Positions 1,422 to 59,772 of a stretch of DNA of 64,000 nucleotides are shown in pieces (within the stretch, counting starts at the first letter, position 1; every line of letters starts with the position of its first letter). The stretch covers positions 248,001-312,000 of the forward strand of contig NIVC01000143.1 of the NCBI GenBank assembly GCA_002269645.1, in the 5' to 3' direction. The position numbers and the translations under genes are program-made. This DNA is from Macrostomum lignano. Its lineage: Eukaryota. The notes beneath the pieces were generated by a model. It did not search any database, was not told the DNA's origin, and saw only the letters and a program-made list of their open reading frames with translations.

Positions 1422-3013
1422 TCACTGCAGTCTCATCCGACTGAGCTTGGCGTGAGTCCAGCTGTCTCTCTGCTCCGCTGCAGTTTCCATGGCAACAAGG
1501 CGACCCAAGTCGGCCCCGTCTCGCCCCAGCTTCGCCCACGTCCACAGCCTTCGTTCCTCATCTTCCATGCTGCGGTGAGCGCCGCTGTCGCTGCCGCTGC
1601 GGTTCGAAACTCGCCACCGCTTCTGCCTGACCCAGCCGATCTTCTCCTTGTCCTGCGTCTCCATGGCGACGCGTCTCTCTTTCTCGATCATCTCCATCTG
1701 CTGCAGGCTGAGCTCCACGTGCTCGCGGCAGTCGCTGTAGTGAGCCAGAGTGAGCAGCTCCTCCAAGTCCGGGTCCTCTTTCAGCTCTCGCTGCCAATCC
1801 TCCAGTTTGATTGAAGATGCTTGATTGCGGAGCAGCTCAGCTTGGAGACTCCAGCTCAGGCAGCGGAAGTTCACGTACAGGTGGGAGGAGAGAGGCTGCG
1901 ACAGTCTGGATGTGAACAGAGTCTGCGTGAACTCGGGAAGGAATGGGAAGCGAGGTGGAGAGTCGCAGGGGAGGCAGAACCTCCACGCCAAGTCTGCGAC
2001 TTCTAGAAATTTCGTTGACCCATATTCAGCTGTTCGAATATTCTGTGGTTTAAACCCTGACTCAACCTGATGTCTCTGCAGCTCCATCGCGAGTCTCTCA
2101 GCCTCCTCAGATTCTCCGAACTTCAAATGCGCCATGGCGGTCATGCACAAGGCGGCGCACTTGCACCACTGCAACTTATTCAGGAGACTTAGTTGCCTTA
2201 CCAGGGTGTCTCTGTCGCTCGATTCTGACTGCAGCTCGCTCACACACTGGTGCACCACACTGTACACATCTGCGAACTTGTAGTACATTTCTGGATAGCC
2301 AGTTCCTTCCCTGATCTCCGTGACAGCAGGCGGCGCTTTCAGAGGCAGCAGAGTGAACGGGTGAAAGTAGAACTTCTCTGACTGCAGAGGTCCCACGTGT
2401 CTCCTCAGCTGCTCGACCACTCCGCCGATGTCGCTTCTCAGCTCACAAAGTCGGTCTCGAACCCTCGCCTTCGTGTTGTCGAAGTCGCCGCCGATTCCAG
2501 CGTTCTTGAAGTAGAGCGGAGCGTCTGGCATGAAGAAGTGCGGCATGCACTCATCGGGCGAGCTGCTCGAGTCGATGAAGCTCAGCATCATGTCGAGAGA
2601 CTCCTTGAGCAGAGCGATCAGATTGTGGGGCTGCCAAGCCACACTTAAAGGACGTTTGCCATGTTTCTCTAGCATTGTGAAGAGCAGAGTCTTTGCATGG
2701 TAGGTCTTGAGTCCAGGTGTGTCCATAGTGTCAGGCAAGTATTTCTTGAAGATGAACTTGATGAGTGTGAACAGCTGGCCCTGGACTGTGCTCAGCCATC
2801 TCATGATGTGTTTCTCTTGGAAGCTGAAGCTCACTCTGAGCTCGTTGGTCGAGCTCGGTCTGGTCGCCTGAACGAGGTGAACTTTATCAAAATTGTGTGA
2901 AAGCAGATTTTCAACCATGTCTTCACAAAACCTGCTGCAGCACTTGATCGCATGGCACGTGTCCTGTGCAGGCCGCACACCGCATGCCGTGGCTGTCACT
3001 GCAGGTTGGCTCC
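1422..3013 (-). CDS. cGLR paralog 1, last exon: third catalytic Asp, Mab-21 C-terminal lobe, helical TPR-like region
   Basis: Acceptor tttgcag|GG. Motifs QDTCHAI (third acidic residue), LRVSFSFQEK, GLKTYHAKTLLF and MPHFFMP are typical of Mab-21/cGAS family C-lobes. Confidence 0.88.
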
Positions 3014-6000
3014 CTGCAAAGCGCATTGAGTGTCACTTTGTGGCGAGTGAAAAATCGGGTCGGTCACAAACTGTAGAATATCTGTTGGCTGTTTGGGATT
3101 TCTGAGTATTTACCGTCCATTGAAATATCCTTTTCAACAAAAAGGCAGTTTTTCTCTTTTCTAAGCTGAAAGCTTCGACAAAAAGTTTTACAACATTTAT
3201 AAAATTGGAATCCATATAAAGTTTTATATAAATCAGCCAAAATGCATTTGCAAGTCTATGCCAAGCCTCTGCTTTAGCTGTTCCGGCTTCAAAAGGTTGT
3301 AACTCAGTACAACTGCTCAAGCATTCTCAGGACTCAGGATTTAATATTTGACGATGTACGCTAGCGAATGTACACTGCAGCGCCCGCGAGAGCTAAAATT
3401 ATGCTATGAACAGAGCAGCAGCACCTCAGCAGAGCCATGCCGCCTACCGTGGGTCACCCAAGCACCGCTGCACCCACTCTGCTGCAATCGGAGCCTGTGA
3501 ATTCAGAACCCAATGGCCCGGCTCAGCCAGTTGGCATCAGAGTTTTTTCAGTTTTGCCTGAAATTTGTTTCTTGTTACAAAAGTGAATCTTTGCCCCAGG
3601 CGGACATTCGAAGTCACAGAAGCTGCTAGAGGCTGGGTGCCACTCGGTTTCGAATTTAAAATTGAGCAAAGTTAATGGGAGATAATAAGTTGCATGCGGA
3701 TCTCAGCATTCTGATGATGAATCCAGCCTCACTCACCTGCTCCCACTGACACCTGTGCGTGGCCCTCCGTGACCTGCTGTCGAGTATCATTTCTGCAAGA
3801 ACCAGATCGTTCTCTGCAGCCACCTTCCAGATGGAACTGCTGCCCAGCAGCCAGCACAGTCCAGTCAATGTCCGAGTCTGCAGCTGTCCTGCCGTTCACT
3901 TGCACCAGACTGTTAGCCCAGCCCTCTGCGTAGCTGCCCGTCATCTGCCTGCCATCCTGTGTGAGGACTTGAGTAACTTTTTCTAGCCAGTCAGCCAGTC
4001 TCTGCTGACACTTTGCTCTTTGGTCGGTGAATCCCGCATCGCTGAGCAGTCGATGCAGCTCCTCGCTCAGACGCCTGTCTTGCTGGGAGTCGTCTGAGAG
4101 CCTGGAATGATTCGAGATGCGCGTGGGTGATTTGCTCAGAGTTGGAGGGACAGAACGAGCAGGAGAGCTGAGAGTGCAGCTGCTGCAGCACTCAGACTGG
4201 CATCTCAAGCAGGACAGCTGAGTCTATTTCATTCGCCACCTTCCTGAGTTTCGCTGCAATTTCTGCCGCAGCTGCCAGTCTGTTGGAAGCATGGATGTAT
4301 AATATAACTAGATCGCCAGAAGCTCGATTTTTTTGGTCCTAGCCATAGACAAGCACCAGCATCACAAGAAGCTCATAATGCCGTACTTTCACACACAGAC
4401 AAATAGCCGCTGCAGGGCTGCAAACCTTTATTTATGAAGTATTCTATTTTATGTCCAAGCACATGCTCGCAATATATGCAGGGCGGCAAAAGATAGCTTC
4501 GCGAAATGAATAAGGACGTCAGAATTTGTGCTGCAATCGGATGCCTATCCAAAAGTGGACAAGGCACGAAACCTGTCACCCTTTTTTCCTATCCAATCGG
4601 TGATCCATATCGACTAGCGCAGTGGAACAGCAATGTACAAGCAAAGCCACATTTCAAATTCGGAGCTCGTAAGTTCCTTTGTGAGCTGCACTTCGAATAG
4701 CGAGACATGCAGGCTTATGGGAGGAGCAAGCGACTGATGACTGGCGCAGTTCCGAAGCTTGAGTGGACTAAGCTTGAACCGCAAGAGCTCCCGATCCAAA
4801 CTTTTATCCAAACGAAGCTACTGGAGACTGTTAGTTTGAAATGCCGATGCCTGTCAGTTGCAGCGCGGCAACCACACGCACATCAGTTGACCCACCAACA
4901 AACACCCGACAGCGCCCGTTGATGCGGCTGAAGCACAAGAAGCGCACGATTAAGACTTTTGGTCCACGCGTTGCAAAATGGTAAAGTACCGAAGCGACCT
5001 TAAAACATGTAAAGCAAATGTTGACTTCTGAAGGTCTCAAGCTGTTTTCTTTACGACCACGAAATACCACAGGTCGTTTCAATAACCACGTCAAAGACTT
5101 CGCCAAGAGGATCAACTTCTGCTCTCCAAAAGCATATCGAGAGTTGAGAAAATTGATGCACCTCCCTTCGCCGTCAACCTTGCGGTCTTGGATTGGAGCA
5201 GTGGATGGCAGGCCTGGCATTTCCATTGCTGGAGTCAAGAAGGTTGAAGCCCCATCGAAACAGATCTTCGATAGCGTCGCTTGCAGCGACTGGACTCTAG
5301 TCATTGATGGCATGCATCTTCGAAAGGAGTTGTGTTGGGAAGCTAGCGAAGGAAGAGTGGTCGGCTATTGTGACTCAGGGATCCATGAAAATTTAGGTCA
5401 CAAACTTGCGTCTGAGGCAATCGTTTTCATGGCCTGCCATCTTCAGCGACCGTGGAAAGTGCCAGTTGCGTACATTTTTACATTTGTACATTTGTACATG
5501 TAAATTGTACATTTACATTTGTACATTTTACATTTTTGCGACCATCAGCATCACTTTGCCGACTGGCGAACATTTGCGAGTCGGCTGTGAAAGGAGTCAG
5601 AACTGACGAACTGTCTGTAGACATACTCGATCGTCTACTTCCAATCTGCATACAACAGGGTATCGAGTTGTCACTCTTCGCTCACGTTTGCAGCAATGGA
5701 GCACTCGAAGAAAACTATCAATATTTTATAGTGCAGACGATTTCTAAGAAATATCTTTGCATTAGGTTGCGGCATGTACTTCGGAGGCTTAATGCTGTGA
5801 ACACAACAACTGTGCGTCAGATGCTAACAAAAAAAAATTCATGGGTCAGTGACTTCAAATTTAATTTGAATGCCTTAAATTTATTGTCTTTACTTGACTC
5901 TCATTTGTCTTGCGCGGTTGGCTTGCAACTCATTTGGCTGTTTGTTTTAGCCTTTTATTGTTTGTTTGTTTGCTGTCTGTCTACGTACTTGTTTGCTTAC

Positions 6001-9000
6001 TTGCCTACTTTCGTGTCTGTTTTGTATTAATTCCTTTACATATTCGTTTTCTTCTTTGCTTGCCTTCACATTTGCAATATTTTCACTTATCCTACTAAGT
6101 ATACTGATAAATAAAGGTTTGCAGCTTCTGCAGCGGCTATTTGTCTATGTGTGAAAGTACGCCATTCTGAGCTTCTTGTGATCAAGGAGTTCTATAATTA
6201 TCAATAGCAACCCTAATAATTATAATAATAATTATGATGTAACCGCCCTTGTCGCCTGTCCGCTCCTATTGAGAGACGAACGCTTGGCTAGAGGGGGCAA
6301 TGACCGTAGGCTGCCTATGACCGGGCAATGACCTGACGGACCTCCAGCACCAGACTGTCCCGCCCACATGATTAGTAGCTTTGGTAGCGCTTCGAGACCA
6401 GAGGGCCAAGGACCCACATGGACCCCACCTGTAGCCAAGGTGCAATAGTTGGTCACTCGGTCATGGTATGACCGAGTGGCTGCCACCACTCTATGTGACC
6501 TGGCGCACCTGGATCTTTCTACCAGACCTCTCGAGGCTAGAGCCCCGCCTGGGATGGTTACCAGGAGATTTAGGCTAACAGGGGAGACACATGCAGCCGA
6601 GTACAGGGACTCTGCTTGGGGCATGATCGGGAACTCTGGGCTCAATCTGGAGGATTTCTCAGCAGGGGATCCTTTGTGGCTGTGAGCGAGGCGGACTTGC
6701 GGCGTCAATTACTAAGAGTAGTATGAGGCGAACATGTACTGTCTATAGTTTAGATTGCTCAGGGCGAAGGGACGCGTCAGCATGGGGTTGCAACCTTCCT
6801 ACTGCCATTCTGTGCCAAGACTCGCTAATTGCCCTCCACTGCACGCACTCACGAACCCGCCGCACGCACTCACACAGGCGGGCTTTGCACGGGGAGAGGC
6901 CATTAGCTTACCCAAACTTCCTTATGCTTTGCCACCCCGGGAGAAAGGCTTAGTAGCATGAGACCGGCATAGCAACATGAGAAATAGGGAAATTGCGCAA
7001 TCCGGAGGTGGGGTGGGGGGATAATTGGCGCAGCGGGTGGTCGCGAAAGTGTTGCGCAAGCAAACATTGAGAACAATAGGGCTGGGGTCGAGAACAAAGG
7101 AATTGGAAATCGGGGATAATTGGGGAAAACTGAGAACAATGGAAAAGTGAACATTGGAGAAAAGGTGAAAATTAGGTGCGAAAACGAGATCAAAAGAAAG
7201 AGAAAATCGGAGAAAATGTGATAATTGGTGGGGGTCGAGAGAACAAAAGAATCGAAAACGAGAACAATAGAAGCGGAGGTGGGGTGGGTGTCGCATGAGA
7301 AATTTGGGGAGGAGAACAATGGCATGAGAAAAGGTTGCGCAAGAGAGGGGGATGAGTCATCGATGAGTCACCGAGGGGGAGAAGGGGTCACACGACTTGC
7401 GTCACCGTTTGGGAGTTTGAGAGGGGATGGGGAGACGGTGAGCACACAAAGTACTGTAAGTAGACACAGGGAAAGAGGGGACAGCGCAGGAAAAGAGTGC
7501 AGAGGGAGACAAAAAAGAGGGGAGATAGGGAAAGTACAGGAAGAATAGGGCGGAAAACAGAAGAGATAGGGTAGAGGGGTAGGTACAGAAAGGGGTGGGG
7601 AGCTCCGGAAAGGCAGGTGTGGCGGCAGGGGAGACGGAACCAAGGCAGTAGGAGGGGTGCAGCAGAGCGGGAGTCTCCAGGCCTGGGCGGAGACCTGGCC
7701 GAGTCTCGACAGCTCTTTGCAGAGGGTGCACGGGATAGGAGGCACTCTCGAAAAAGTTCCCATGCCCTATCCCGCGACCAGAGCGTGGTTACATCAATTA
7801 TAATTGCTAATTATAGAACTCCTTGCTTGTGATGCTGGTGCTTGTCTATGGCTAGGACCAAAAAAATCGAGCTTTTGGCGATCCAGTTATATTATTCATC
7901 CATGGTTTCATCCATGGTTGCAATGCGGCAGTGAAAGCCGAACCGGTCAGACTCACCGATGGTGGCCCGAATCCAAGCGGTGAGCGGCTGCCTGCCGGGC
8001 ATCTGGGCTTCTGCAGTGCGTGAAGGAAAGCCAGGGTTCTCACAGCAGTTCAGTCTGAGATTATTCACTAATCACTTCACTGAGTCGGGATCTTCCATTG
8101 CATTTCCAGGCAAAGTGCCTAGTGCAGCTTCATCGAAATTCCAGCGGTTTTTTAGTCGAAAAAAGCAAAAGCGCAGGGACAGGCACGCAGAAGTAGAAGA
8201 CCGAAAGAAAGGAGGCAATGAGCAAGAGACAGTCGAGTAATGAACGGAGGAAATCCGCGAACTAAAAAGGAAGGCCACTTGCTAGACCGGAAATCTGAGA
8301 CTTTAGTGCTGATGAGTTTAAAATATTGAAGCGTCTGCGGTCTTCAGTGAGCTGCATCTGAGCAAACCGGTGCCAGACAGGGGCTGTTCGATCCTGATAA
8401 GATGTGCTGTAGGGTTCAGAAATTTGACATTAGGATAAGAAATTAAATAAGCGAGGCGAAGCCAGAGTTCAGAGAGCATTATGATGCAAAAAAGCAGCCC
8501 ACTAGAGGTAAGAGAACGCCAGAAGCAAGAAAACACCGAAAGTAAGAGAAAGCCGGGAGCAAAAGGAGACCAAGGCATCGAATAGGCTTTTCTCCTTACT
8601 GTCAGCCGGATTTTTGGTTCCCACTGCGCTTCATTTATATTTTAAATGTTTGCACCTAAATTTGAAAAAACATTTTTAAGCCGACGATTGAGGTGGGGTT
8701 CGGGTGAGAATATTGAGTGCATACAATGCTCACACCACTTCCAGTAGGAGCTAGAAGGCGCAATACAAAGTATGAGCTGCATAGAATGTAGTCATAGTTG
8801 CGAAAGACGGCTGAACCTAAAACTAGCTGTGTATAATTTACATTTGTTCGATGTTGCCTATAAGAGTTTACCTTCCCACGCGCATGTTTTTCAGTGTTTT
8901 AAATAAAAAGGAGAAACAATGGAGGCGCTCAAGGGGGCCGTAGCCCAGCGGTAGCGCAGCTGCTCTGGTGTGCCAGCGACCCAGGCTCGATTCCAAGTGC

Positions 9001-12000
9001 AGTCAACATTAATTTGGGGCTGAGTTGGAATCTCGGCTTGGCTCTGCTCGTGCAATTAACGGCCTTGAGAGCCAACCCCCCAAGGCGCAGTGAAGTGTAC
9101 ATGCCTAACGATAAAATAAAGTTAGGCCGTTGTACACTTCTGTGTGAGTGTGTGCCTGCGTACGTATCCGCGCGCTTGTATGCCTGCTCAGGGTAGTCGG
9201 CGGAATGGGCAGTAATGCCTCTCGCCGGTTGTGTGCCAATGTCGCTTAAAGTGCGCCAGGGTGCACACCCCCCTGCCTGTAATAAAAAAATGGAGGCGCT
9301 CGCTTCACTGTTCTCTCGCCCGCCTCTGCGGGGCCCAAAGGCTTGGCCATTGACCCGGCTGGGCTGTGTAGACTGCAGAAGCCTGGGCCCAGAAAAACCA
9401 TGCTTCGAGTTTAATTCTTTGCTATCCGGCGTGAGCAGAAGGCGCAGGCAGGACTTAACCTACCTGTTACACAAAGTAAATGGCAAAAGTTCACTGAAAA
9501 AAGTATTTACATTAAACGATAAAAATAGAAGCTCCTTGCTTTCTGGCCGATCCTACAAGCAGCTGAGCCTCTCGCTGACTGGTTTCGGTCGCTGTCTCAT
9601 CCGGCCGGAACCTCGTTTTCGTCGAATAGCTGAGCCCAGGCCTCAGGCGCCTGGAGCTGAGAGTCCCACAGTCCGTCAGCAGTCGCGTCTACGGTAGCCT
9701 GCAAGTCATCGCCGGGTCGTAAATAGTTACGCCGTTCCACGAATGGTTTGAGCCGGTCGGTGGTGCACCACCTGCCTGCGTCGCATCCGCACGCGATGCC
9801 GGTTGCATTCAGTAGTTGACCTCGCCGAGCTTCTTCAGGATGATGTACGGCCCGGTCCAGCGGTTATTGAGGCTTTTCGATCTGCCAGGTTTCACCACCT
9901 TGCAGATCAGCATCACCAGGTGGCCCTCCTCGGATGGCCGGAATCGAGTCTCCATGTTGTACCGCTCGTTGCGCTCGGCCTGCGACGTCTACAGCTGCTG
10001 ATGAACACGCGCCCGAGTGTCCCGCAGGTGCCTCTAAGTTGTCTCTGCAAAGTGCAGAGCATCAGTGAAGCCATCCTGTGCCTTTGGTAACTTGGAGTCG
10101 ATTGACAGCCTTGGTGGCCATCCGTGAAGCGTCTGGTACGGCGACAAGCCCATGGCTGAGTGCACTTAGTTTTTGAAGGCCCACGTAACGAAAGCGAGTT
10201 GGAGAACCCAGTCGTCCTGGTCCTCGGTCACAACCGTCGCTAGCATGTCACCAAAGGTTCGATTGTCGCGCTCGTATAGGTCGTTGCCGCTGGAGGTGAA
10301 GTGCGGCTTTTTCGAGCCTCTGGCACAGAAACTGGAACCGTTGGCTTTTGAATTGACGCCCTTGGTCGCTGCGGGGCACAGTTTCTGCCAGATTTAGATA
10401 TTGATTGAAATCATAGGCGCCCGGAGCGCCATTGGAGATGACGAGCCAGAAGTGGTCTGACAGGAGCTTACCCCAGGCGTTGCGGGTCTCGGGTCTGGCC
10501 GCCTCATCCCAGGAGTGGAAGGCTTGGAAGGCTGGCGATATAGGAATCTGGTGCAGAGTACGGTGAGTCAGTTTCTCCGGTCGCGATAGCTTAGGCTTCT
10601 TGAGGGAGATATTGTCGAGAGCTGCGTCCCAGCTAAGTCCCAGGATTGTCCTGGAGTTGGGATATCGCCGAGGCGAACTTTTTGCGAAAGGTCGGCGTGG
10701 AAGTCAGAGAGGTTTGTGGTGGACCCTCGGAGATGGAAGCAGGCTCTTGAAGATGGAAGCAGACTCGGCGGAAGAGCTCGCGGAGGCCGGAGACAAGACG
10801 GGCAGCATCTTTCTTGGTGTCATCGCCTATGACGAAGTTATCGACGTAGATACCGCGGTTGATGCGCTTGAGCTCGGGTCAAGTTAGATCGGAATGTTTA
10901 TTGCGTCCATGCAGATCTTGTAGATAACCGCTAGAAGAACCCACGGACCAGAAGAACTTGCATCGGCCATACCGATGCGAGTGAAGCGCCAGAGCTCAAA
11001 GTTGCCCTGTACTAGCGCCTTGGTGATGTCCTTGGGGAGGATGATGGCGTTGCAGTGAAGCTCCTGAACACAGGTAAAAGGCGGCCTTGAGGTCCGATGA
11101 GATGCTGAAGCGGTGAGCGCGGTAAACTAGAACGACTGGCAGCATGCAGTGCATCGGAGTCTGGAGCAGTGGTTCTGGCGAGAGACATCTGCACCGGGTG
11201 GAGTGTCGTCGATGAAGATAGTGCGCGTAGTGTTAGCCAGGCTCTGCTGTAAAGATCATTGTGGTGAATCCTATAGGACGGGCTGCTTGGCAGGTCTTCA
11301 ACCACGCTCTGCTGCCAAATTGTCCAATTGATAATAGGACAAATACCAAAGACGGAACTAACACTTCACTTGAATCTAAAGGGGTGTAAACTTTAAAGTC
11401 AAAATGGAGCCTGAAGAATTGGGTCGTCAGTTCATACGCCAATCTCTTCTTTTGGAGCCAAAAATGCTCCTGTTATGTCGAAAACCCAACCGCTTTACCC
11501 GCCGGGGAATAGAGTCGTTTCTTTAGACGATTCCGCTGGGAAACGCACTCGTTTCTCCCTAAAAAAACGGCCAAACAAAAAACGTCTTAGGAAGTCGATT
11601 CTTTGGATAAGAATCGCCACTCAGAGCAGTATTTCTTGGCATTGTTTGGAAACGGTCAGGAAAGAGCCGAAGCGATGGAATCGAATAAAGAATCGAAAGA
11701 ATCGTCGTTCGATTCCTGGGTCGATTCCAAAATTTCTTTCGATTCTGTTCTCGCACAGAAACGAAGCAAGATTTTACTTCGATTCCTGGGTCGATTCCAA
11801 CCATTCCTTTGATTCTGTTCTTTACATAGAAACGATGCAAGATTATAATCTAGTATCATTTAAATGTTCGCAGTGTAGACTGCACTTTTTTGTAAAAAAA
11901 TTACGTCGCAAAATGTTTTTGGTTTTGGAACACGCATTGAAAAATTAAAAGTCAATCTATCTAGTTAACCATCTATCTAATGGATCTATCTGATTTTATT

Positions 12001-15000
12001 CATGTATTTTCCTATTAAATTTTTTAGCTATGTTCGTACATCGTTTACGATCGAGCTTCGTGTGTAATGAAAAAAACCTAAATATATTTCTCAAAAGTTA
12101 TCCTGTAAATTACAAACAAATTAACTGCACTAGCCAAACGAGTCAGCTCTACCCGAGCCAGCATTTTGAATATCTGAAAAAGAAGGTAGTGTTTGTTCGG
12201 CTGTTTCCTGGCCGTTTCCAAACAATGCCAAGAAATACTGCTCTGAGTGGCGATTCTTATCCAAAGAATCGACTTCCAAAGACGGTTTTTTGTTTGGCCG
12301 TTTTTTTAAGGAGAAACGAATGCGTTTCCCAGCGGAATCGTCTGAAGAAACGACTCCATTCCCCGGCGGGACATGTAAATACTACGCACGAAACGAAGCA
12401 ATGGGCCAATCCGGCCCAAAGTCCTGCGTAGGAAGCGGAGAAACTGAATCGCCATAAAAAGCAGTTTCCTGTGGTTGGAAACTGCGTAGGAAACGACTCA
12501 ATATTTTAATTCGTTTCTTTCTTCGTTTCCGCACATTTAGCGTGACGAAACTGCCGAATTAAGCAGTTTCCTCTAGCACTGCGGAGACCATAGAATTTTG
12601 GTCTACTTTAGTCCGTTTCCAGCAAAAAATGCTGCCGAAGAAACGTCCCAATTATCCACAGGGTTAGCATTTGGGGAGCTCTATGGATTAGTTCACACCT
12701 CCTTATCGATTGAGCAACAATTTGCACAATCTCTTAAGTACACACACACATGCGCAATGATAAAAGGAACTCATTAGAGGCAACCAAACGGAAAAAAAAT
12801 TACACAGGTGAGTTAGGAAAAGGAGTAACATTGTCAATTTATATTCATAATTCTGACAGCAGTTGTTCACATAAGGGCGCTCCGATCCCGATATATTTTT
12901 TTGCTGCTTCGTGCTGTGCCGGTGACAAACGTATTCCTTGTCTCATCTCAAACTGCTAGGAATTATTTATTTCTGTGCCTTTCTTGTCTTCTTTTCTTCC
13001 ATTATTTCTTCATAACTTCTTCCCTCGTCCTTGTGTTCGTCTGTTCTTCTAACTCTACATATGCTTACAAATATTACAGATATTCTTTACTTAAACACGA
13101 TGCAGTATTGAAAAGACTCGCCAAAATTTCGTCGCACTCACCCCGCTCCACTGAGATCGCGACAGTAACTCGTAACTCGACAGTTGTGAATAAAAATAAA
13201 AACTAAGCCGACTACAAACTCACCCAGCTCCAGTTGGATCCAGCAGCCGCAGCACCTGCCGCTGCTCAAATCGCTGTGCCACCTGCGCACACGTCTGACC
13301 CCGACCGTCTCGATGACTCGCATCCGCTCCTCTGTCCATCAGAGCCTTGGCTGCTCGCACCTGACCGGCTTCGCACGCTCGTGACAGAGCAGTCCGACCC
13401 TCACTGTCTTCAGCACGCACTGACGCACCGAGATCGATGAGTTTCTCAATGAGCTCGTGATGACCTGCATCAGCTGCCAGCATGAGAGCAGTGGCTCCAG
13501 TGCTGTCTGGCAGATCGACATGCTCTGTGCTGACTCGCTCATTATTGATCAGTGTGATAGCAAGAGCGACGTATCTTTGAGAGATGGAGAGACGGAGCAG
13601 CTGTGTGATGTGAGCTGGCTGCATTCGAGAGAGGGTGTCGGTGAGAACAGAGTTCCTGCCTTCGATGGCCATTGCTGCAGTGAAGCTAATGACGGAGCTA
13701 GATCGGAAGAGCCAGTCAGGCTCGAGGCCGAGGAAGGCAACGAAATCCTCGCGAAGACGAGAGCAAGCCTTGACTGCACATTGGAAACGGAGATTCGCGC
13801 TCTGATCCGGACTTGAGAGACACAAGATGAGGAACTTAAGGACTTCTAAGTGACCACTGCTTGCAGCAGATTCCGCAGCCTCGATGCAACACTGATCTCT
13901 TATTGCTTTGTCAGCGACTGTCTGGACAAGAAACTCGACCACTTCTATGTGACCAGTCATTGCAGCGTATTTTGCAGCCGCGATGCAGCACTGACTTCTT
14001 TTTGTTTGGTCGGCGACTGTCGCAACGAGAAACTTGACGACTTCCCACTGATCCTGGAATATAGCAGATTCTGCAGCGTCAATGCAGCAATCATCTATTT
14101 TTGTTTGGTCAGCGACATTCAGCACGAGAAACTTGACGACTTCTAACTGACCATTGATTGCAGCAGATTCTGCAGCTTCGATGCAGCAATCATCTCTTTT
14201 TGTTTGATCAGTGACTTTCGCAACGAGAAACTTGACGACTTCCCACTGATCCTGGCTTATAGCAGATTTTGCAGTTTGGATGCAGCAATCATCTATTTTT
14301 GTTTGGTCAGCGACATTCAGCACGAGAAACTTGACGACTTCTAACTGACCATTGATTGCAGCAGATTCTGCAGCTTCGATGCAGCAATCATCTCTTTTTG
14401 TTTGATCAGTGACTTTCGCAACGAGAAACTTGACGACTTCCCACTGATCCTGGCTTATAGCAGATTTTGCAGTTTGGATGCAGCAATCATCTATTTTTGT
14501 TTGGTCAGCGACATTCAGCACGAGAAACTTGACGACTTCTAACTGACCATTGATTGCAGCAGATTCTGCAGCTTCGATGCAGCAATCATCTCTTTTTGTT
14601 TGATCAGTGACTTTCGCAACAAGAAACTTGACGACTTCCCACTGATCCTGGCTTATAGCAGATTTTGCAGTTTGGATGCAGCAATCATCTCTTTTTGTTT
14701 GGTCAGCGACTTCCAGCACGAGAAACTTGACGACTTCCCACTGACGCCAGATTACAGCAGATTTTGCAGTTTGGATGCAGCAATCATCTCTTTTTGTTTG
14801 GTCGGCGACTGTCGGAACGAGAAACTTGACGACTTCCCACTGATCCTGGAATATAGCAGATTCTGCAGCGTCGATGCAGCAATCATCTCTTTTTGTTTGA
14901 TCAGTGACTTTCAGCACGAGAAACTTGACGACTTCCCACTGATCCTGGCTTATAGCAGATTTTGCAGTTTGGATGCAGCAATCATCTCTTTTTGTTTGGT

Positions 15001-16270
15001 CAGCGACTTCCAGCACGAGAAACTTGACGACTTCCCACTGATCCCGGCTTATAGCAGATTTTGCCGTTTGGATGCAGCAATCATCTCTTTTTGTTTGGTC
15101 AGCGACTTCCAGCACGAGAAACTTGACGACTTCCCACTGATCCCGGCTTATAGCAGATTTTGCAGTTTGGATGCAGCAATCATCTCTTTTTGTTTCGTCA
15201 GCGACTTTCAGCACGAGAAACTTGACGACTTCTAACTGACCATTGATTGCAGCAGATTCTGCAGCTTCGATGCAGCAATCATCTCTTTTTGTTTGATCAG
15301 TGACTTTCGCAACGAGAAACTTGACGACTTCCCACTGATCCTGGCTTATAGCAGATTTTGCAGTTTGGATGCAGCAATCATCTCTTTTTGTTTGGTCAGC
15401 GACTTCCAGCACGAGAAACTTGACGACTTCCCACTGACGCCAGATTACAGCAGATTTTGCAGTTTGGATGCAGCAATCATCTCTTTTTGTTTGGTCGGCG
15501 ACTGTCGGAACGAGAAACTTGACGACTTCCCACTGATCCTGGAATATAGCAGATTCTGCAGCGTCGATGCAGCAATCATCTCTTTTTGTTTGATCAGTGA
15601 CTTTCAGCACGAGAAACTTGACGACTTCCCACTGATCCTGGCTTATAGCAGATTTTGCAGTTTGGATGCAGCAATCATCTCTTTTTGTTTGGTCAGCGAC
15701 TTCCAGCACGAGAAACTTGACGACTTCCCACTGATCCTGGCTTATAGCAGATTTTGCAGTTTGGATGCAGCAATCATCTCTTTTTGTTTCGTCAGCGACT
15801 TTCAGCACGAGAAACTTGACGACTTCTAACTGATCCTGGAATATAGCAGATTCTGCAGCGTCGATGCAGCAATCATCTCTTTTTGTCTGATCAGTGACTT
15901 TCGCAACGAGAAACTTGACGACTTCCCACTGATCCTGGCTTATAGCAGATTTTGCAGTTTGGATGCAGCAATCATCTCTTTTTGTTTGGTCGGCGACTGT
16001 CGGAACGAGAAACTTGACGACTTCCCACTGATTCCGGATTACAGCAGATTTTGCAGTTTGGATGCAGCACTCATCTCTTTTTGTTTCTTCAGCGATTTTT
16101 GGCAGGAGAAGCTTGACGACTTCCCATTGGCCCTGCTCTGCGGCCAGTTGAATATTTGCTTTGCAAAAGCGGGTCTTCCATGTTTGTCCCGGTCGAATCA
16201 GCAGATGAGCTCTCACTGCTGTGATGTTGCCACTAATGACAACCTGATTTGAGCTGAGGTTTTGTCCCAT
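1422..16270 (-). CDS. Predicted 4-exon gene: ankyrin-repeat / Mab-21 (cGAS-like receptor) fusion, ~1685 aa; join(16270-13224, 8010-7957, 4101-3737, 3013-1422)
   Basis: All three donors are GTGAGT (13223, 7956, 3736) and all acceptors end in CAG (8011, 4102, 3014). Phases are 2/2/1 and the exons sum to 5058 nt = 1686 codons with no internal stop. Exons 2-4 have the same splice sites in the paralog. The link from the ANK exon to the micro-exon is inferred. Confidence 0.7.
3737..4101 (-). CDS. cGLR paralog 1, NTase core exon
   Basis: MTGSYAEG...ADSDIDWTV matches the hG[GS]...DxD signature of Pol-beta-superfamily NTases. It is preceded by a spine-helix-like segment (RLSEELHRLL...). Acceptor cattccag|G, donor GCAG|GTGAGT. 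Confidence 0.88.
4506..5830 (+). pseudogene. THAP-domain P-type transposase, broken (nonsense codon, frameshifts, central deletion)
   Basis: THAP C2CH finger CAAIGC...FSYP...W...LCELHF, then TAG at 4698 and the AVP motif. Also SPKAY, LPSPSTLRSW, LVIDGMHLRK, LASEAIVFM, WKVPVAY and C-terminal KKYLCIRLRH. The region containing the later catalytic residues is missing. Confidence 0.88.
6183..7825. mobile_element. Tiny non-autonomous DNA transposon (~77 bp without its insert), 18-bp TIR, 8-bp TSD
   Basis: CAAGGAGTTCTATAATTA (6183-6200) is inverted at 7808-7825, and CTTGTGAT is duplicated at 6175-6182 and 7826-7833. Confidence 0.88.
6235..7796. mobile_element. Probable solo LTR, 1562 bp
   Basis: Termini TGATGTAACC...GGTTACATCA (TG..CA, 10-bp inverted) with ATTA on both sides (6231-6234, 7797-7800). 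No coding motifs recognised inside. Confidence 0.7.
7957..8010 (-). CDS. 54-nt symmetric (phase 2/2) linker micro-exon of paralog 1 (SPDARQAAAHRLDSGHHR)
   Basis: Polypyrimidine acceptor ctttccttcacgcactgcag and donor CG|GTGAGT. Same length, splice sites and frame as 59719-59772. Confidence 0.8.
8931..9288 (+). mobile_element. tRNA-derived SINE, ~358 bp
   Basis: tRNA-like head GGGGCCGTAGCCCAGCGG (A box) ... GGCTCGATTCC (B box), A-rich tail, and 13-bp TSD AATGGAGGCGCTC at 8918-8930 and 9289-9301. Confidence 0.9.
9700..10300 (-). pseudogene. Degraded Ty3/Gypsy integrase remnant (element may extend to ~11450)
   Basis: Minus-strand translation gives ERDNRTFGDML...DQDDW (integrase core end) and SLNNRWTGPYIILKKLGEVNY (GPY/F module), with stops. 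Confidence 0.7.
11498..12370. mobile_element. Foldback/MITE-like element with ~175-bp inverted arms
   Basis: 11498-11671 is the near-perfect reverse complement of 12196-12370, with internal GATTC-rich subrepeats. A looser related arm ends GGG|TTAG at 12663 and the left flank is TTTA|CCC, weakly piggyBac-like. Confidence 0.75.
13224..16270 (-). CDS. Ankyrin-repeat exon (23 tandem 33-aa ANK-like units plus 3 canonical ANK repeats), first coding exon of the predicted fusion
   Basis: Open frame over 3 kb starting MGQNLSS. Canonical repeats DSTGATALMLAADAGHHELIEKLIDLGA and DSEGRTALSRACEAGQVRAAKALMDRGA. The apparent stop TGA (13222-13220) lies within GG|GTGAGT. Confidence 0.88.
13853..16129 (-). 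repeat. Coding tandem array, 23 x 99 bp
   Basis: Unit Q(W/L)EVVKFLVxxVxD(Q/E)TKRDDCCIxxAxSAxxxx, counted directly in the translation. Confidence 0.95.
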
Positions 16271-16340
16271 TGTGCGGCTGTTAATTGTGTAACTGCCGTT
16301 GTAAACTGCCGTTGTAAACTGCCATTGTATAGGTGTAGAG

Positions 16341-16640
16341 CTGCTGTCAGAGTGGCAGATGTCAGTCACGGCTGCATTCAGAGCGGCAGGTGTCAGTCAC
16401 GGCTGCTGTCAGAGCCGCAGAGGTCAGTCACGGCTGCTGTCAGAGCCGCAGATGTCAGTCACGGCTGCTGTCAGAGTGGCAGGTGTCAGTCACGGCTGCT
16501 GTCAGAGTGGCAGGTGTCAGTCACGGCTGCTGTCAGAGCGGCAGGTGTCAGTCACGGCTGCTGTCAGAGTGGCAGATGTCAGTCACGGCTGCTGTCAGAG
16601 CGGCAGGTGTCAGTCACGGCTGCTGTCAGAGCGGCAGGTG
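16341..16640. repeat. 31-bp minisatellite, ~10 copies, just upstream of the ANK start codon
   Basis: Unit TGTCAGTCACGGCTGCTGTCAGAG(C/T)GGCAG(G/A). Confidence 0.92.
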
Positions 16641-17189
16641 TTTCAAACGTCTGTGCAGCCGGTTGCCAGAAAGATTTTACCGCCTCATCTCTCAGCTGCC
16701 CTCCCTTTTGCAGCCTCTGGCGAGGCCGACCACCCCGGCCTGAGCAACCGAAACTTCTCTCCAGAGCATGTGCGCTGAGTCCGCCTTCTGAGCACTTCAG
16801 CCCCCAGGATGATAACGGAGGGGCTGCGGCTGCAGCGGCCACCCCAAGCTGTATTTGATGAGGCTGAACTGGTTAAAATTTACAGTGCGTTTGAGGGAGA
16901 AAGAGGAGAGGGAGAAGGAAGGGAGGGAAGAAAAGGGGAGCGGGAGGGATGGAGGAGAGAGAGAGGGAGGGGTAAGGTGGCATTGTTAAGTCGCCTTGGT
17001 GAGTTTTCTCTCTCGGCTATGTTAACTGCAGCAGCTTCAGCCAGTTATACAGTGTAGAGAGTTAATAAAACCATACCCTAAAGCACTACTTAAATTGATG
17101 CTCTTGGAAAAGTCTATTTTAATCCGCAACCTAGAGTCACGCGCAAATAGAGTGACTCAAAACTCCACGTAGGACCAACGTCTGTTTGA

Positions 17190-39749: not shown

Positions 39750-42700
39750 ATGAGGTTGAACCCTCGGGCCAATTGTTCAGGCCACACTCACCCGAGTAGC
39801 AGAAGACAGCCACCCATGGCCCGTTCTACCGGCTGTCTCGGGGGTCTGTCCTGGCCCATCAGCACGGTTTTATTTATCTGTGTTTTTCTTTGCTTGGCCC
39901 CTGACCGCCTCATTCTTCGCGCGGGGGACGTCAAAACCAACCCAGGCTCGTCCTGGCCGTGTGGCTCCTGCGGACAAAACGTGGGCAATTTCTCGGCCAT
40001 GCAATGCCGAAACTGCCTCGTTTGGACCCACAGCAACTGTGCCCTCCTCACCAAGATCCACCCAGATCCGACAACTCGCTAAACAAGACGGGGTGGATGG
40101 ACCTGCGAGACCTGTATGAAACCCGCGGCCCCACCAGACGGCAAATCTACCGACAGAGCGACCAGTCCTCCTGGAAACGGAATGCTAGGAATACCGACTG
40201 GACCGCCTTCAGGCTTGCCCTGGAGGAGACCTATCGTTGCACTAGCACTCCAGTCTCCATCAACACCTGCGAAGAAGCAGATGAATTTGCGGCCGCACTT
40301 ACGGACTCGCTCACTGCTGCCTTCGAAGCCTCATGCCCACTAAGGGCATATAAAGGCAAACAGTCGGCCCCATGGTGGAACCCGCAGCTTGGCGACCTCC
40401 GTCGCAGAGCCAAAAGGCTTCACCGCAGGGCCCAAAAAACTAAAAACCCGGCCGACCAAACCGCCTACCTGAACTCTATCCACGAGTTCAAGAGGCAGGT
40501 TAGGAACGCCAAAACCAACAAGTGGCGCGAAAACTGTGAGGAACTTGAGGGCTCCCGCCCCACCTCCAGAATCGTTAAAGCCCTCACCCTGGACAAAATG
40601 TCCAAACTCTCCTCAGTCAAGAGAGCCGACGGCTCGCTCACTGAGAACCCAGGAGAAACGCTGGAAGCGATGCTAACAGCGTTTTTCCCGAACGAGCCAG
40701 CCAGGCCCGACCCCCCTGATCACTCAGTGGGCGGACACGTACTGGCTGACTCAATCATCACGGAGGACCGCGTTACTAAAGCTGTCTCCTCCTTCAAACC
40801 CTTCAAATCCCCAGGACCGGACGGCGTTGTGCCAGCCTTCCTGCGGGAGGCTGTGAAATGCACCGGTTTCCTGGGGAACCTTTGCCGGCTTCTGAAAGGT
40901 TGCATTGTTCTCGGCTTTGTTCCGAAACCCTGGACCGAGGCCAAGGTGGTCTTTATCCCCAAGCCCGGCCGACCGGACTACCGGTCCATTAAATCCTTCA
41001 GACCAATTAGCCTCACCTCCTCATTGGTGAAGCTGTTAGAGAGACTGGTGCTCTGGCGCCTCCTCTCTGTGGAACTGAAGAACAAACCGCTCAGTGAGAA
41101 CCAGCATGCCTTTCGGGCAGGCAGGTCCACGGAGAGCGCGCTTCACGTTCTGGTTGACATGCTGGAGAAAGCCGTTCTTGGTAATGGCTACGCTCTCGCT
41201 GTCTTCCTCGACATTGTTGGAGCCTTTGATAATGTCCTCTTTGAGGCTTTTGACAGAGCTCTACGTGCTAGAGAAACCCACTCGCACCTCACCCGGTGGA
41301 TCATGTATATGATCAGCCACCGTACTGCCACCGCACACCTGTTGGGCCACCAACGGACGGTAACCGTCTGCAAAGGCAGCCTCCAGGGCGGTGTCCTCTC
41401 TCCAGTTCTCTGGAACATGGTCATCGATAAGCTCCTCCAGGACAGCCATCTTGACCCCATCCTCAAGGTCGGTTACGCCGATGATGTCACAGCCGTGGCA
41501 TCCGGACCGTCACCTGAAACCCTCGGGATCTTTTGCAAAACTTCATTCGCTCTGCTGAACGTTAGGCGGACGGGTGCGGCCTCAGGCTCTCCGAGACCAA
41601 AACTGTCGCGATCATGTTCACCAGCAGGGTAAACTGGCGTATTCGCCCACTAAAGCTTTACGGGGTGGAAATTCCATCCTGCAAGCAAACAAAGTTTCTC
41701 GGCGTTACGCTGGACCACCGGCTGAGCTGGTCCACCCACGTCCAGGCCAAAACCAAAAAGCCCTCGCGATTCTTGCGCAGCTGCGCAGAGCCGTCGGCAC
41801 CACCTGGGGCCTCACCCCAAAACGGCTCTGGTGGATCTATACCGCAATGGTCCGACCGGCCGTTACTTACGCCGGCCTGGTCTGGATCAGCGCCTTGCAG
41901 ATTAAAACCTGCCACGAAGCCCTCAAAAAGGTGCAGGGACGTGCATGCCGCATGATCCTGAATGCCCCGCTCTCTGCTCCCTTTGACGGCCTCAACGCCT
42001 TTCTTTGCCTCCCGCCTCTGGACATCTTTGTCCGTCGCGAGGCAGCTAAAACCACCCGCCGGCTCATCGAGGCTGGCGCTAGCTTCAAGCCACAAAGAGC
42101 GATGGCGAAGCGCAAGCTCCTGCCGCACTCTGACCTGTGCCTTAAAGTTCTGGAGGAGAGTGGGAGTGCGGCTGTCCTTTCGGACGCTGAACCGCGCTCC
42201 CTCAATCTCTACCAACGCTTCAAGGTCACTATCCCCTCCAGGGAGAACGCCAACGACAGCTGGGCCCCTCAGGAGGTTCACTGCTTCACTGACGGATCCT
42301 CCAAAGACGGTTTATCCGGCTTTGGAGTCTGTATCCTTATCAACGGCCGCGTGATTGCTACTCACGCCCAACACACTGGCAGACTCTCCAGCGTCTTCCA
42401 GAATGAAGTCCTTGCCATCAGCTCCTGTGCAGCTGAGCTCCACTGCAGGGACTTCAAGGACAGAAGAATTTTCTTCCACTCTGACAGCCAGGCCGCTTTG
42501 CAGGCCCTGTGTCACACCACTACGAACTCCCGAACAGTCCGCGACTGTATCGGGCAGCTCAACAAGCTGGCTCGGAGGAACACCGTCCGGCTCACGTGGA
42601 TCCCAGGACACGCCGGCTTCAAAGGTAACGAGCTCGCCGACTCCCTCGCTAAGGCGGGCTGTTCCGGCTCGCCCCTTGGCCCCGTGCCCCTGGCCCCCAT

Positions 42701-43278
42701 CCCCGCCACAGTCATTAATCGTCAGATTAACAACTGGGCGGACATCCTGCACTTGCGCAGATGGGATGGTATCTCCAACTGCCGCCAATCTCGTGCGGCA
42801 GTGCCCAATCCATCCCTCAAGCTGCGGAGAATCCTTTTGAATCAAAGTCGAAAAGATATCCGCGCTCTCACTATGACCTTCACAGGTCACGGTTGCTTTG
42901 CCAGGCACTGCTTCCTCCGATGTGTTCGCCGGAGTGAACTCTGCCCTTTCTGCAACCTCGTGAACGAAGACGCCAAGCACTTCGTCTGCTACTGCCCGGC
43001 CTTCAACCGAGACCGGCTCAACCACCTCGGGCCCAACCCGTCCCTGGACGACGTTTGCCGGCCCGAGAACATCCCACGGCTCATCCGGTTCCTCCGGGCC
43101 ACCAAACGAGCCTCCGTCTTCCCCACCGAAGACAACGCTGCAGACAGGACCGGCAGACCTCCCTGACCGGCCCCGCGCCCTAGCCTATGCGGGTCTTTCA
43201 GGGATTAGCGGAATGGGCGACGCTCGCCTCCCCGCTGCGTCTTCGGACCGCCCTGCAGCTAAGTCAAGTAAGTCAAGA
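39750..43278 (+). mobile_element. RNase H-containing LINE (LOA/R1-group-like RT) with an N-terminal 2A-like motif and PHD finger, no APE domain, one frameshift
   Basis: GDVKTNPGS plus CGSC...QCRNC..WTHSNC. RT motifs FKSPGPDG, RPISL, QHAFR, FLDIVGAFDNV, QGGVLSP, YADD. RH motifs FTDGS, FHSDSQAAL, WIPGHAGFKGNELAD. CCHC finger and tail (TAAGTCAAG)2. Confidence 0.9.
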
Positions 43279-43439
43279 CCAGTCCTGCCGTTATCACCAT
43301 TAACCGCTACGAGTCAGGAGGCGCACCTAAGCAGCCACCAGTCACTAACCGGGCGCAGACGGGCTGCCAGAAACGATCGGTAAAACCGGCCAGCAACGCC
43401 CAACCACAGAAACCACCGGCTAATGTCACCCAGCAGGCC

Positions 43440-56421: not shown

Positions 56422-56758
56422 GGACTTGGTGTCTATATTAGTGTTCCACAGCTCACTTTGCGGCCCCGCACAATCCCCATCTCCATCAAGTGAATTTTAT
56501 CAAGCAAATCTGTAAAGCAAGGCTGGCATTTCAAAGACATTCAAGCCAGCATCAGAGCTGGCATTGAGAGCGAGTGGCAAGTCGCATCGTTCTATATTTA
56601 GAAACTGAAACAGTGCATTTGGTTTATGGCACAGAGCAGGCATAAAATGTGGACTTCAATATTGAAATGGCCGCATTTTTGAATTCATCAGCAGCGTGCG
56701 GAGCTCTTGAATCGGACAGAAAAATGAATGGCGACTGGGGCCGCGACCTGCCTGTCCG

Positions 56759-57347: not shown

Positions 57348-59772
57348 TCAAGCTGCTGCATCAAGTCTCTCCAGCTTCTCCCTGACCCACCCGATCCTGT
57401 TCTCGTCCTGCGTCTCCATGGCGACGCGTCTGTCTTTCTCGATCATCTCTATCTGCTGCAGGCTGAGCTCCACGTGCTTGCGGCAGTCGCTGTAGTGAGC
57501 TAGAGTGAGCAGCTCCTCCAAGTCCGGGTCTCCAAGCAGCTCATCGGAGTCCGGGTCTCCAAGCAGCTGCTCAATCCAATGATCGAATGCGATTGCAGGT
57601 GCGCGATTGCAGAGCAGCTCAGCTTGGAGACTCCAGCTCAGGCAGCGGAAGTTCACGTACAGGTGGGAGGAGAGAGGCTGCGACAGTCTGGCTGTGAACA
57701 GAGTCTGCGTGAACTCTGGAAGGAATAGGAAGCGAGGCGGAGAGTCGCAGGGGAGGCAGAACCTCCACGCCCAGTCTGAGTTTTCTGGCAGTTTTATCTT
57801 GATCCGGTACATGCTACTCTCGTCTCGAATATCCTGTGGCTTCAACCCTGACTCAACCTGATGTCTCTGCAGCTCCATCGCGAGTCTCTCAGCCTCCTCA
57901 GATTCTCCGAACTTCAAATGCGCCATGGCGGTCATGCACAGGGCGGCGCACTTGCACCACTGCACCTCATGCAGGAGACTGAGGTGCCTCATCAGGGTGT
58001 CTCTGTCACTCGATTCCGACTGCAGCTCGCTCACACACTGGTGCACCAAACTGTACACGTCTGCGAACTTGTAGTACATTTGTGGATATTCATTACCTTT
58101 CCTGATCTCAGTGGCAGCAGGCGGCGCTGTCAGAGGCAGCAGAGTGAACGGGTGAAAGTAGAACTTCTCTGACTGCATAGGTCTCACGAGTCTCCTCAGA
58201 TGCTCGACCACTCCGCCGATGTCGCTTCTCAACTCACAAAGTCGGTCTCGAACCCTCGCCTTCGTGTTGTCGAAGTCGCCGCCGATTCCAGCGTTCTTGA
58301 AGTAGAGCGGAGCGTCGGGCATAAAGAAGTGCGGCATGCACTCATCGGGCGAGCTGCTCGAGTGGATGAAGCTCAGCATCATGTCGAGAGACTCCTTGAG
58401 CAGAGCGATCAGATTGTGGGGCTGCCAAGCCTCAGTTCCAGGATCTGTGCCATGCTTCTCCAGCATTGTGAAAAGCAGAGTCTTTGCATGGTAGGTCTTG
58501 AGTCCAGGTGTGTCCAGAGTGAGCGGCAAGTGTCTCTTGAAGATGAACTTGATGAGTGTGAACAGCTGGCCCTGGACTGTGCTCAGCCGTCTCATGATCC
58601 GTTTCTCTTGGAAGCTGAAGCTCACTCTGAGCTCGTTGGTCTCATTCGGTCTGGTCGCCCGAACGAGGTGAACAGGAACACTGTATCCAAGCAGTTCTTT
58701 CATTCTGTCCTTACAGAAACTGCTGCAGCAGTCGATCGCATGGCAGGTGTCCTGTGCAGGCCGCACGCCGCAGGCCGTGGCTGTCACTGCAGGTTGGCTT
58801 CCTGCAGAGCGCATTGAGAGTCACTTTTTGGGGAGGGAACAAGATGGGTTTTTTTGAAACTGCTTTTTTAGTTTTTCAAATACCAATTTGAAAGGTTTCA
58901 ATTTTTATAACTCTTTATTTGATCGCATAGCGACTGGACAGGACAGGCTTTCTCAGTTTTCAGTTCAAGCATCATCAGGACTCAGTGCCCCGCAGCAAGG
59001 CACCAATCAGGAAGTCAAGGTTGGTTTCGGCTCATTTTTTCACACTTTACAGGGTATGAGGCAACTCGAATGCCTTATGAATTTCAAACACGGCTACTTG
59101 AATTCTTGAAAATTTTGCATTCGGCTTTAAGTTGCAGGAAGATCTGGGAACTTTGATGATGAACCCAGCCTCACTCACCTGCTCCCACTGGCACTTGTGC
59201 GTGGCCCTCCTTGACCTGCAGCCGAGCGGCTTCAATGCAGGAACCGTAGCTTCCTCCGCAGCCACCTTCCAGATGGAACTCTTGCCCAGCAACCAGCACA
59301 GTCCAGTCAATGTCCGAGTCTGCAGCTGTCCTGCCGTTCACTTGCACCAGACTGTTGGCCCAGCCCTCTGCGTAGCTGCCCGTCATCTGCCTGTCATCCT
59401 CTGTGAGGATTCGAGCGACTCCTTCCAGCCAGTCAGCCAGTCTCTGCTGACACTTTGCTCTCTGCTCGGTGAATCCCGCATCGCTGAGCAGTCGATGTAG
59501 CTCCTCGCTCAAGCGCGAAGAGCGTGGGAGTCGTGGGAGCACGGTATCTTGGTGGGAGTCGTCTGAGAGCCTGGAATGATCCAAGATGCGTGTGGTGATT
59601 TTCTGAGTTTGATAGACAGAACAAGCAGGAGAGCTGAGAGTGCTGCAATTTCTGCTCCAAGCTGTCTGCCTGTTGGAAGGCGCAATGCGGCAGTGAAAGT
59701 CTAACCGGCCAGACTCACCGATGGAGGCCCGAATCGTAGCGGTGAGCGGCTGCCTGCAGGGCCTCTGGGCTT
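57348..59772 (-). CDS. cGLR paralog 2, 5'-partial; join(59772-59719, 59570-59179, 58801-57348), ~632 aa in the window
   Basis: Same exon boundaries and phases as paralog 1 with an uninterrupted frame. GSYAEG...DSDID, QDTCHAI, LKTYHAKTLLF and MPHFFMP are intact. No in-frame ATG before the micro-exon acceptor. Confidence 0.87.

Follow-up and report, generated by a model that had tools for sequence, protein, structure and literature searches.

How many genes underlie an ankyrin-repeat reading frame and the two halves of a Mab-21-like enzyme that follow it on the minus strand of contig NIVC01000143.1 from the flatworm Macrostomum lignano, and what might their product do? The stretch analysed here (positions 248,001 to 312,000 of the contig, assembly GCA_002269645.1), referred to throughout as the window, comprises 64,000 nucleotides (nt) and had been interpreted in a sequence-only reading as harbouring one hidden gene, in which a large, recombining ankyrin (ANK) array is joined to a cGAS-like receptor (cGLR). 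Our analysis supports this proposal by transcript models of paralogs, the predicted fold, the alignment of the catalytic residues and Pfam Ank matches. With a probability of roughly 0.7, the locus represents one gene of a lineage-expanded ankyrin-cGLR type, whose four exons are spliced into one mRNA encoding a cytosolic protein of 1685 amino acids (aa) that would work by a cGLR-type mechanism.

The predicted protein starts with MGQNLSS and continues with about 24 degenerate ankyrin units of 33 aa, a linker, three canonical ankyrin repeats and an 18-residue linker encoded by a mini-exon, followed by a cGAS-fold nucleotidyltransferase (NTase) with the motifs GS / DxD / D and finally by a family-specific C-terminal domain.

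Exon structure and the paralog family

When single open reading frames (ORFs) are considered, the gene is split, as the sequence-only reading had warned, into a frame of 1049 codons with the ankyrin repeats (16369-13220) and two further frames (4208-3729 and 3026-1422), each corresponding to one half of a Mab-21-like protein; a gene model with a stop codon concealed within a splice donor escapes annotation at this level. The ankyrin frame terminates with ...GGA GCT GGG TGA, and reading the minus strand base by base confirmed that this TGA falls within a phase-2 donor, GG/GTGAGT (13223-13218), the final exon base being 13224. All junctions show consensus GT/AG sites. In detail, the mini-exon reads ctgcag/AAGCCC...CATCG/gtgagt, exon 3 has the acceptor ttccag/G at 4101 and the donor GCAG/gtgagt with 3737 as its final base, and exon 4 has the acceptor tttgcag/GG at 3013, with the stop codon of the gene at 1424-1422. 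The joined coding sequence comprises 5058 nt, that is 1685 codons plus stop when counted from the first ATG, and contains no internal stops (Table 1).

The peptide over the first two junctions is LLDPTGAG-SPDARQAAAHRLDSGHHR-LSDDSQQDRRLSEEL, the part that follows SPDARQAAAHRLDSGHHR at the exon 3 junction opening with LSDDSQQ..., and it is identical to the one given in the sequence-only reading, all coordinates of which were correct, as was the stop-free spliced frame. The 54-nt exon with phase 2 on both sides and the phase-2 acceptor of exon 3, said there to be conserved in a paralog, were found both in a second copy within the window and in a public locus (see below).

Table 1. Coordinates of the gene, its second copy and other elements in the window (position 1 is the first nucleotide of the window)
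Feature	Position	Strand	Description
Exon 1	13224..16270	-	ATG 16270-16268 (MGQNLSS...); ankyrin array, linker region and three canonical ANK repeats
Intron 1	8011..13223	-	5.2 kb; GTGAGT donor, CAG acceptor; without long ORF
Mini-exon	7957..8010	-	54 nt, phase 2 on both sides; encodes (G)SPDARQAAAHRLDSGHH(R)
Intron 2	4102..7956	-	3.9 kb; P-element/THAP9-like transposase remnants inside
Exon 3	3737..4101	-	365 nt; N-terminal spine helices and first half of the NTase core
Intron 3	3014..3736	-	Donor GTGAGT, acceptor tttgcag
Exon 4	1422..3013	-	Remaining NTase core, Mab-21_C helical lobe, C-terminal domain of about 230 aa, charged tail
Degenerate ankyrin unit array, 99 nt (33 aa)	13865..16126	-	23 CCI-anchored units and 1 degenerate first unit
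31-nt tandem repeat	16340..16641	-	9.7 copies, directly 5' of the start codon
Transposase remnants in intron 2	5018-6030	+	Pfam TNP-like_RNaseH_N and Tnp_P_element
Copy 2 (paralog, 89% nt identity)	57348..59772	-	Mini-exon 59772-59719, exon 59570-59179, exon 58801-57348
LTR-retrotransposon-like segment	19873-24096	-	
LTR-retrotransposon-like segment	31540-34630	+	
LTR-retrotransposon-like segment	48721-51302	+	
LTR-retrotransposon-like segment	60277-63869	-	In intron 1 of copy 2, orientation as the gene
Non-LTR retrotransposon pieces	39959-44687	+	GC-rich (54-59%); reverse transcriptase, RNase H and endonuclease (Exo_endo_phos_2) ORFs
Long low-complexity tandem repeat	55724-56515	+	Reads (VLVS)n in one frame
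Array of about 37-nt period	56787-57110		Downstream of copy 2; 28-nt core also once at 656-683, downstream of copy 1

For homology searches, the non-repetitive tail of exon 1 was combined with the mini-exon and the enzyme part into a query of 867 aa. Every strong match was a protein of M. lignano; more than 40 of these proteins align with the enzyme part, and Ank domains are likewise present in almost all of the latter. The proteins P0001-P0009 (P and L numbers are our own handles) show 76-85% identity at up to 100% coverage of the query and share their junction peptides with the window gene, that of P0001 reading LLDPSGAGSPEARQAAAHPLDSGLHRLSDDSKQ. A search for other proteins with both ANK and Mab-21 parts, as recommended in the sequence-only reading, thus yielded more than 20 annotated M. 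lignano paralogs in which the two parts are linked by the mini-exon peptide, and the sequence VGAGSQPAVTA spans the third junction throughout the family.

The exon plan itself recurs at the public locus of P0004, BOX15_Mlig012509g1 of assembly GCA_002269645.1 (L001). Here exon 1 ends with ...GCGGG/GTGAGT and an in-frame TGA in the donor, followed by a 54-nt mini-exon (8597-8650), a 365-nt exon 3 (9132-9496) and the final exon. Because the annotated paralogs share the junction peptides and L001 shares the exon structure, the joining of the exons goes beyond chance. By this four-exon plan of hidden stop, 54-nt mini-exon and 365-nt exon 3, the window gene belongs to the ANK-cGLR family of M. lignano. 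As the GenBank BOX15 models were derived from a genome-guided RNA-seq transcriptome (StringTie, TACO) together with de novo assembly (PMC5730564), the fusion transcript is experimentally grounded for the paralogs. The idea that the frames are open by chance was rejected, being ruled out by the junction evidence from the paralogs.

The same junctions bear on the alternative of two independent genes, in which an ankyrin-repeat gene would finish with the TGA at 13222-13220 and a cGLR gene would be transcribed from a promoter of its own. In favour of this alternative, an in-frame stop closes the ANK ORF, the pieces lie 9 kb apart, and a few public models such as P0019 comprise the NTase only. However, the stop lies inside a consensus donor that the transcript-based model of the paralog removes by splicing, the mini-exon peptide joins both parts in the annotated paralogs counted above, and exon 3, which the frame enters in phase 2, therefore lacks a start codon context of its own. 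Two genes are therefore highly improbable, and we have discarded this alternative as ruled out by the paralog junctions.

Conservation extends into the 5' flank, which, including the 31-nt repeat found by Tandem Repeats Finder (TRF) and by direct reading, is 91-95% identical to positions 5096-5743 of L001 (repeat at 5331-5743) and hence better conserved than the ankyrin coding array (about 77%). The repeat is probably the 5' untranslated region (UTR) or a promoter-proximal region and may act as a regulatory or 5' UTR element. At the other side of the start codon, the MGQNLSS N-terminus (residues 1-7, window 16270-16250) fits the pattern MGxxxS, which we take to be that of N-myristoylation; P0004 (MGQNLSS) and P0003 (MGQNQS) begin likewise. 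If this signal is real, the protein could be tethered to a membrane.

Fold and catalytic residues of the enzyme part

The AlphaFold2 model of the NTase part, for which 35 sequences of the family were used, reached a predicted local distance difference test score (pLDDT) of 85.3 and a predicted template modelling score (pTM) of 0.89. When this model was compared with the PDB using Foldseek, all of the 50 best matches listed were cGAS, with E values of 2e-7 to 1e-5, a probability of 1.00 and TM scores of 0.5-0.56, normalised to the target. The structure prediction proposed in the sequence-only reading has thus returned an NTase fold with confidence, and the enzyme part is predicted to adopt the bilobal cGAS-type Pol-beta NTase fold.

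With respect to sequence, a single-sequence search of the NTase part against the PDB sequences gave nothing relevant; the family profile found cGAS at 3e-4, Drosophila cGLR1 at 0.013 and MAB21L1 at 0.14. An exhaustive HMMER search collected 795 cluster representatives as relatives, of which 87 reached E<=1e-30. The named strong ones were all from M. lignano, and the weaker relatives were proteins with Pfam Mab-21 and Mab-21_C, some with tetratricopeptide (TPR) repeats. A word-indexed homolog search with the family profile returned only M. lignano proteins and one metagenome contig of 3 kb. Alignment of the flatworm profile with Pfam Mab-21-positive proteins by hhalign gave a probability of 99.96% and an E value of 4e-39. 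By profile, the closest canonical Mab-21 relatives (E 4e-39) are Mab-21/Mab-21_C proteins with a C-terminal TPR module (set A3), which have the catalytic columns in common with the window protein; both fuse a repeat module to the enzyme, TPR at the C-terminus in set A3 but ANK at the N-terminus in the window protein.

In the hhalign alignment, G1089-S1090, D1111, D1113 and D1173 fall on the invariant G60-S61, D74, D76 and D176 of the canonical Mab-21 set. The corresponding codons are located at 3938-3933 (G1089-S1090), 3872-3864 (D1111-I-D1113, exon 3) and 2963-2961 (D1173, exon 4), and these residues show a conservation of at least 90% across 35 members of the family. Because of the invariant columns and this conservation, the GS...DxD...D set appears to be intact by homology, which agrees with the sequence-only reading. 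By fold, sequence homology and catalytic residues, the window gene belongs to the cGLR / Mab-21 family.

Vertebrate cGAS and Drosophila cGLR1 resemble the window protein in their bilobal NTase fold, the layout GS / [DE]x[DE] / D and the Mab-21_C helical lobe. The window protein is only 12-15% identical to them and differs by its N-terminal ankyrin solenoid, an additional domain at the C-terminus (about 230 aa) and an 8-residue insert before DxD. Nucleic-acid sensing is a trait of cGAS and cGLR1 which need not extend to the window protein.

Alternatively, the NTase-like domain might lack catalytic activity and serve as a scaffold, a role proposed for MAB21L1, with signalling by protein-protein contacts or by attached effector domains. 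Several observations fit a scaffold. In the M. lignano relatives P0128, P0260 and P0131 a caspase (Peptidase_C14) domain follows the NTase and ANK parts, and in P0007 a protein kinase domain follows the NTase, suggesting direct effector coupling. The 8-residue insertion lies between the GS loop and DxD when compared with canonical Mab-21 proteins, and the divergent relative P0046 has lost DxD. In addition, five M. lignano NTase domains (constructs 89-93) were cloned for a screen of 140 enzymes (Li et al. 2023, bioRxiv 10.1101/2023.02.22.529553, PMC9980059), and the main text of that study does not mention any M. lignano enzyme by name; construct 93 is BOX15_Mlig016402g1 (P0003), which is 84% identical to the enzyme part of the window gene. 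However, conservation of GS, DxD and the third D on the invariant Mab-21 columns is hard to explain without catalysis, and inactivity in vitro was attributed to missing ligands by the authors of the screen (Li et al. 2023, PMC9980059). We therefore regard a pure scaffold as unlikely.

The ankyrin array, its proposed role and selection on the gene

Exon 1 scores 182 bits with Pfam Ank_2. Within the degenerate array, TRF detects a period of 99 nt with 22.8 copies, and all 22 anchor-to-anchor intervals measure exactly 33 aa. Nine units alone reach 54.3 bits with Ank_4 (cut-off 22.7) and 54.0 bits with Ank_2 (cut-off 27.3), and the C-terminal ANK block is canonical (Ank_2, 68 bits). The tandem units of about 33 residues hence match ANK profiles and are ankyrin repeats; the profile check on the spliced gene that had been suggested gave Pfam Ank_2 and Ank_4 scores above the cut-offs.

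In a unit-by-unit difference matrix, the block of units 5-7 recurs without any nucleotide change as units 12-14; likewise, no differences exist among units 16, 18 and 20 or among units 8, 17 and 19. This identity points to recent unequal crossing-over, an assembly problem being less likely. The description of the array as a recombination-prone repeat solenoid, put forward in the sequence-only reading, is thus well founded on DNA-identical units and higher-order duplications. The number of units is also variable, with about 24 in the window gene as opposed to about 3 in P0003, 9 in P0001 and 11 in P0004. A further M. lignano relative, P0134, carries an array of canonical ANK of about 950 aa.

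It is established for cGLRs that the enzyme is inactive until a ligand is bound and then makes a nucleotide signal. In the window protein, engagement of a ligand might likewise activate the nucleotidyltransferase, and the nucleotide second messenger it would produce could then be read by a downstream receptor, by analogy with cGLR pathways elsewhere. Recognition could be diversified among the paralogs as array units are gained and lost. The ankyrin solenoid itself may be the ligand-binding or regulatory module, since the ANK modules of cGLRs have already been proposed to mediate protein or ligand interaction (Li et al. 2023, PMC9980059).

The second copy in the window possesses a mini-exon with AG/GT sites, a phase-2 acceptor at 59570, a frame that is open through 57348 and an intact catalytic motif. 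Its ankyrin exon would sit past the retroelement in its intron 1, outside the window. Over about 610-630 enzyme codons, the ratio of nonsynonymous to synonymous substitution rates (dN/dS) of the window gene lies at 0.61-0.66 against copy 2 (0.66) and L001, that of copy 2 against L001 at 0.63; over the last 200 codons of exon 1 it is about 1.1. At dS values of 0.14-0.19, about 630 codons have remained open in the two window copies as well as in L001, and all three frames are intact. These values would fit purifying selection that is weak or selection that is in part diversifying, a pattern often seen in expanded families of the immune type, and are no proof of function.

Several points weigh against the interpretation of the locus as one working ankyrin-cGLR gene. 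The junctions backed by RNA-seq come from paralogs, the splicing of this copy being predicted from sequence. Introns 1 and 2 are loaded with transposon remnants and measure 5.2 and 3.9 kb, the corresponding introns of the annotated paralog having about 0.9 and 0.5 kb (intron 2 has about 480 nt in L001 and about 150 nt in copy 2). In the public protein set, none is more than 85% identical to the window gene product, and for this reason the exact gene seems to be unannotated. The dN/dS of 0.6-0.7 shows only weak constraint. The Mab-21 part of the suggested HMMER check was only partly positive: Mab-21_C lies at its threshold (cut-off 24.1 bits; the exon-4 ORF scores 24.3 and the spliced domain 23.8), and the Pfam Mab-21 NTase domain PF03281 has no match in the window protein. 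That the paper on the screen described above names none of its M. lignano enzymes in the main text belongs here as well.

Some of these observations also favour the view that this particular copy is a silent or decaying duplicate, intact by recency only and mis-spliced owing to its transposon-bloated introns. Relative to the paralogs, introns 1 and 2 are extended 5- to 25-fold and contain transposon remnants, no matching public protein was found, and dN/dS amounts to 0.6-0.7, with about 1.1 for the last 200 codons of exon 1. On the other hand, the 5058-nt frame is intact over four exons with every splice site at consensus, and the 5' flank is conserved (91-95%) with an expressed paralog. Moreover, transcripts overlapping repeats were deliberately dropped from the GenBank annotation (PMC5730564), which could explain the absence of the gene. 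We regard decay of this copy as quite improbable, and the interpretation as one spliced ankyrin-cGLR gene is retained.

Known systems, effector-fused relatives and other elements

Some cGLRs bear ankyrin or TPR modules, and the ANK-cGLR is one of the architecture classes in Figure 1C of Li et al. 2023 (PMC9980059). The domain table of that study lists M. lignano proteins with Ank_2, including PAA68676.1, and the UniProt names of such M. lignano proteins already carry a Mab-21-like domain plus an ANK repeat region. Because these tables and names already describe both, the architecture and the M. lignano family are annotated and published, and the window gene is a further member; the novelty of the combination implied by the sequence-only reading does not hold. 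When the literature was searched for Macrostomum together with STING and cGAS, no title or abstract dealt with flatworm cGLR or STING signalling.

The nearest counterparts, BOX15_Mlig012509g1 (P0004), BOX15_Mlig016402g1 (PAA68676.1, P0003) and BOX15_Mlig034155g1 (P0001) of M. lignano, show 82-84% identity over 93-100% of the 867-aa query and have the domain order, junction peptides, exon plan, MGQN start, catalytic motif and C-terminal domain in common with the window gene. The latter differs from them by more array units and much longer introns, and no identical public protein was found. The ANK-cGLR fusions catalogued by Li et al. 2023, e.g. from the coral Stylophora pistillata, share the cGLR NTase core fused to ankyrin repeats, no ligand or product being reported for any ANK-fused member; compared to these, the flatworm clade is highly divergent, Pfam Mab-21 not being detected and Mab-21_C being borderline.

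Outside the cGLRs, receptors of the NLR (nucleotide-binding, leucine-rich repeat) type may be compared by functional analogy only, as they too would combine a variable repeat solenoid with a signalling module in an expanded family with paralog-dependent repeat numbers; the window protein has no NACHT/NB-ARC domain and no homology to them. The leucine-rich repeat (LRR) arrays in NLRs or in variable lymphocyte receptors (VLRs) are an example of variable recognition modules diversified by crossing-over. By this analogy, the flatworm family might constitute a modular innate-immune receptor system, in which ankyrin arrays shaped by unequal crossing-over would be variable recognition modules on a cGAS-like enzyme, some with caspase or kinase outputs, a suggestion that we consider speculative and rather doubtful. 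If it is true, such a logic of sensor, enzyme and effector would be new for animal cGLRs, and the window gene would be the member with the longest array among those compared. No mention of caspase- or kinase-fused cGLRs was found in the text and supplements of Li et al. 2023 or by literature search.

The locus thus adds one apparently unannotated paralog, with an unusually long and recently recombined array, to a published ankyrin-cGLR family, and illustrates that a multi-exon model with a stop hidden in a splice donor can be recovered by reading the sequence alone. The family is very large in M. lignano, a transgenic model animal, and could be tractable for asking what repeat-fused cGLRs sense. 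Worth following up are the scale of the expansion in the flatworm, the recombining arrays, the caspase- and kinase-fused relatives and the C-terminal domain.

This C-terminal domain of about 230 aa (residues ~1365-1600, window ~1422-2130) is conserved and family-specific, with the invariant motifs FHPF, WRFC, LYVNFRCLSWSL and ELLTLAHYSD. Its model has a pLDDT of 87.7; there was no significant fold match in the PDB (best E 0.25, weak TPR-like matches) and no Pfam family was assigned. Near the C-terminus, an acidic repeat, LGDPD[SL]EEL (window ~57600-57700), occurs once in the window gene, twice in copy 2 and many times in P0002 and P0005, and forms a second variable-repeat region of the family.

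With regard to the remaining elements, the four segments resembling long terminal repeat (LTR) retrotransposons bear gag, protease, reverse transcriptase, RNase H or integrase ORFs, and several of them are fragmented. The order of the non-LTR pieces at 39959-44687 suggests two adjacent or rearranged copies.

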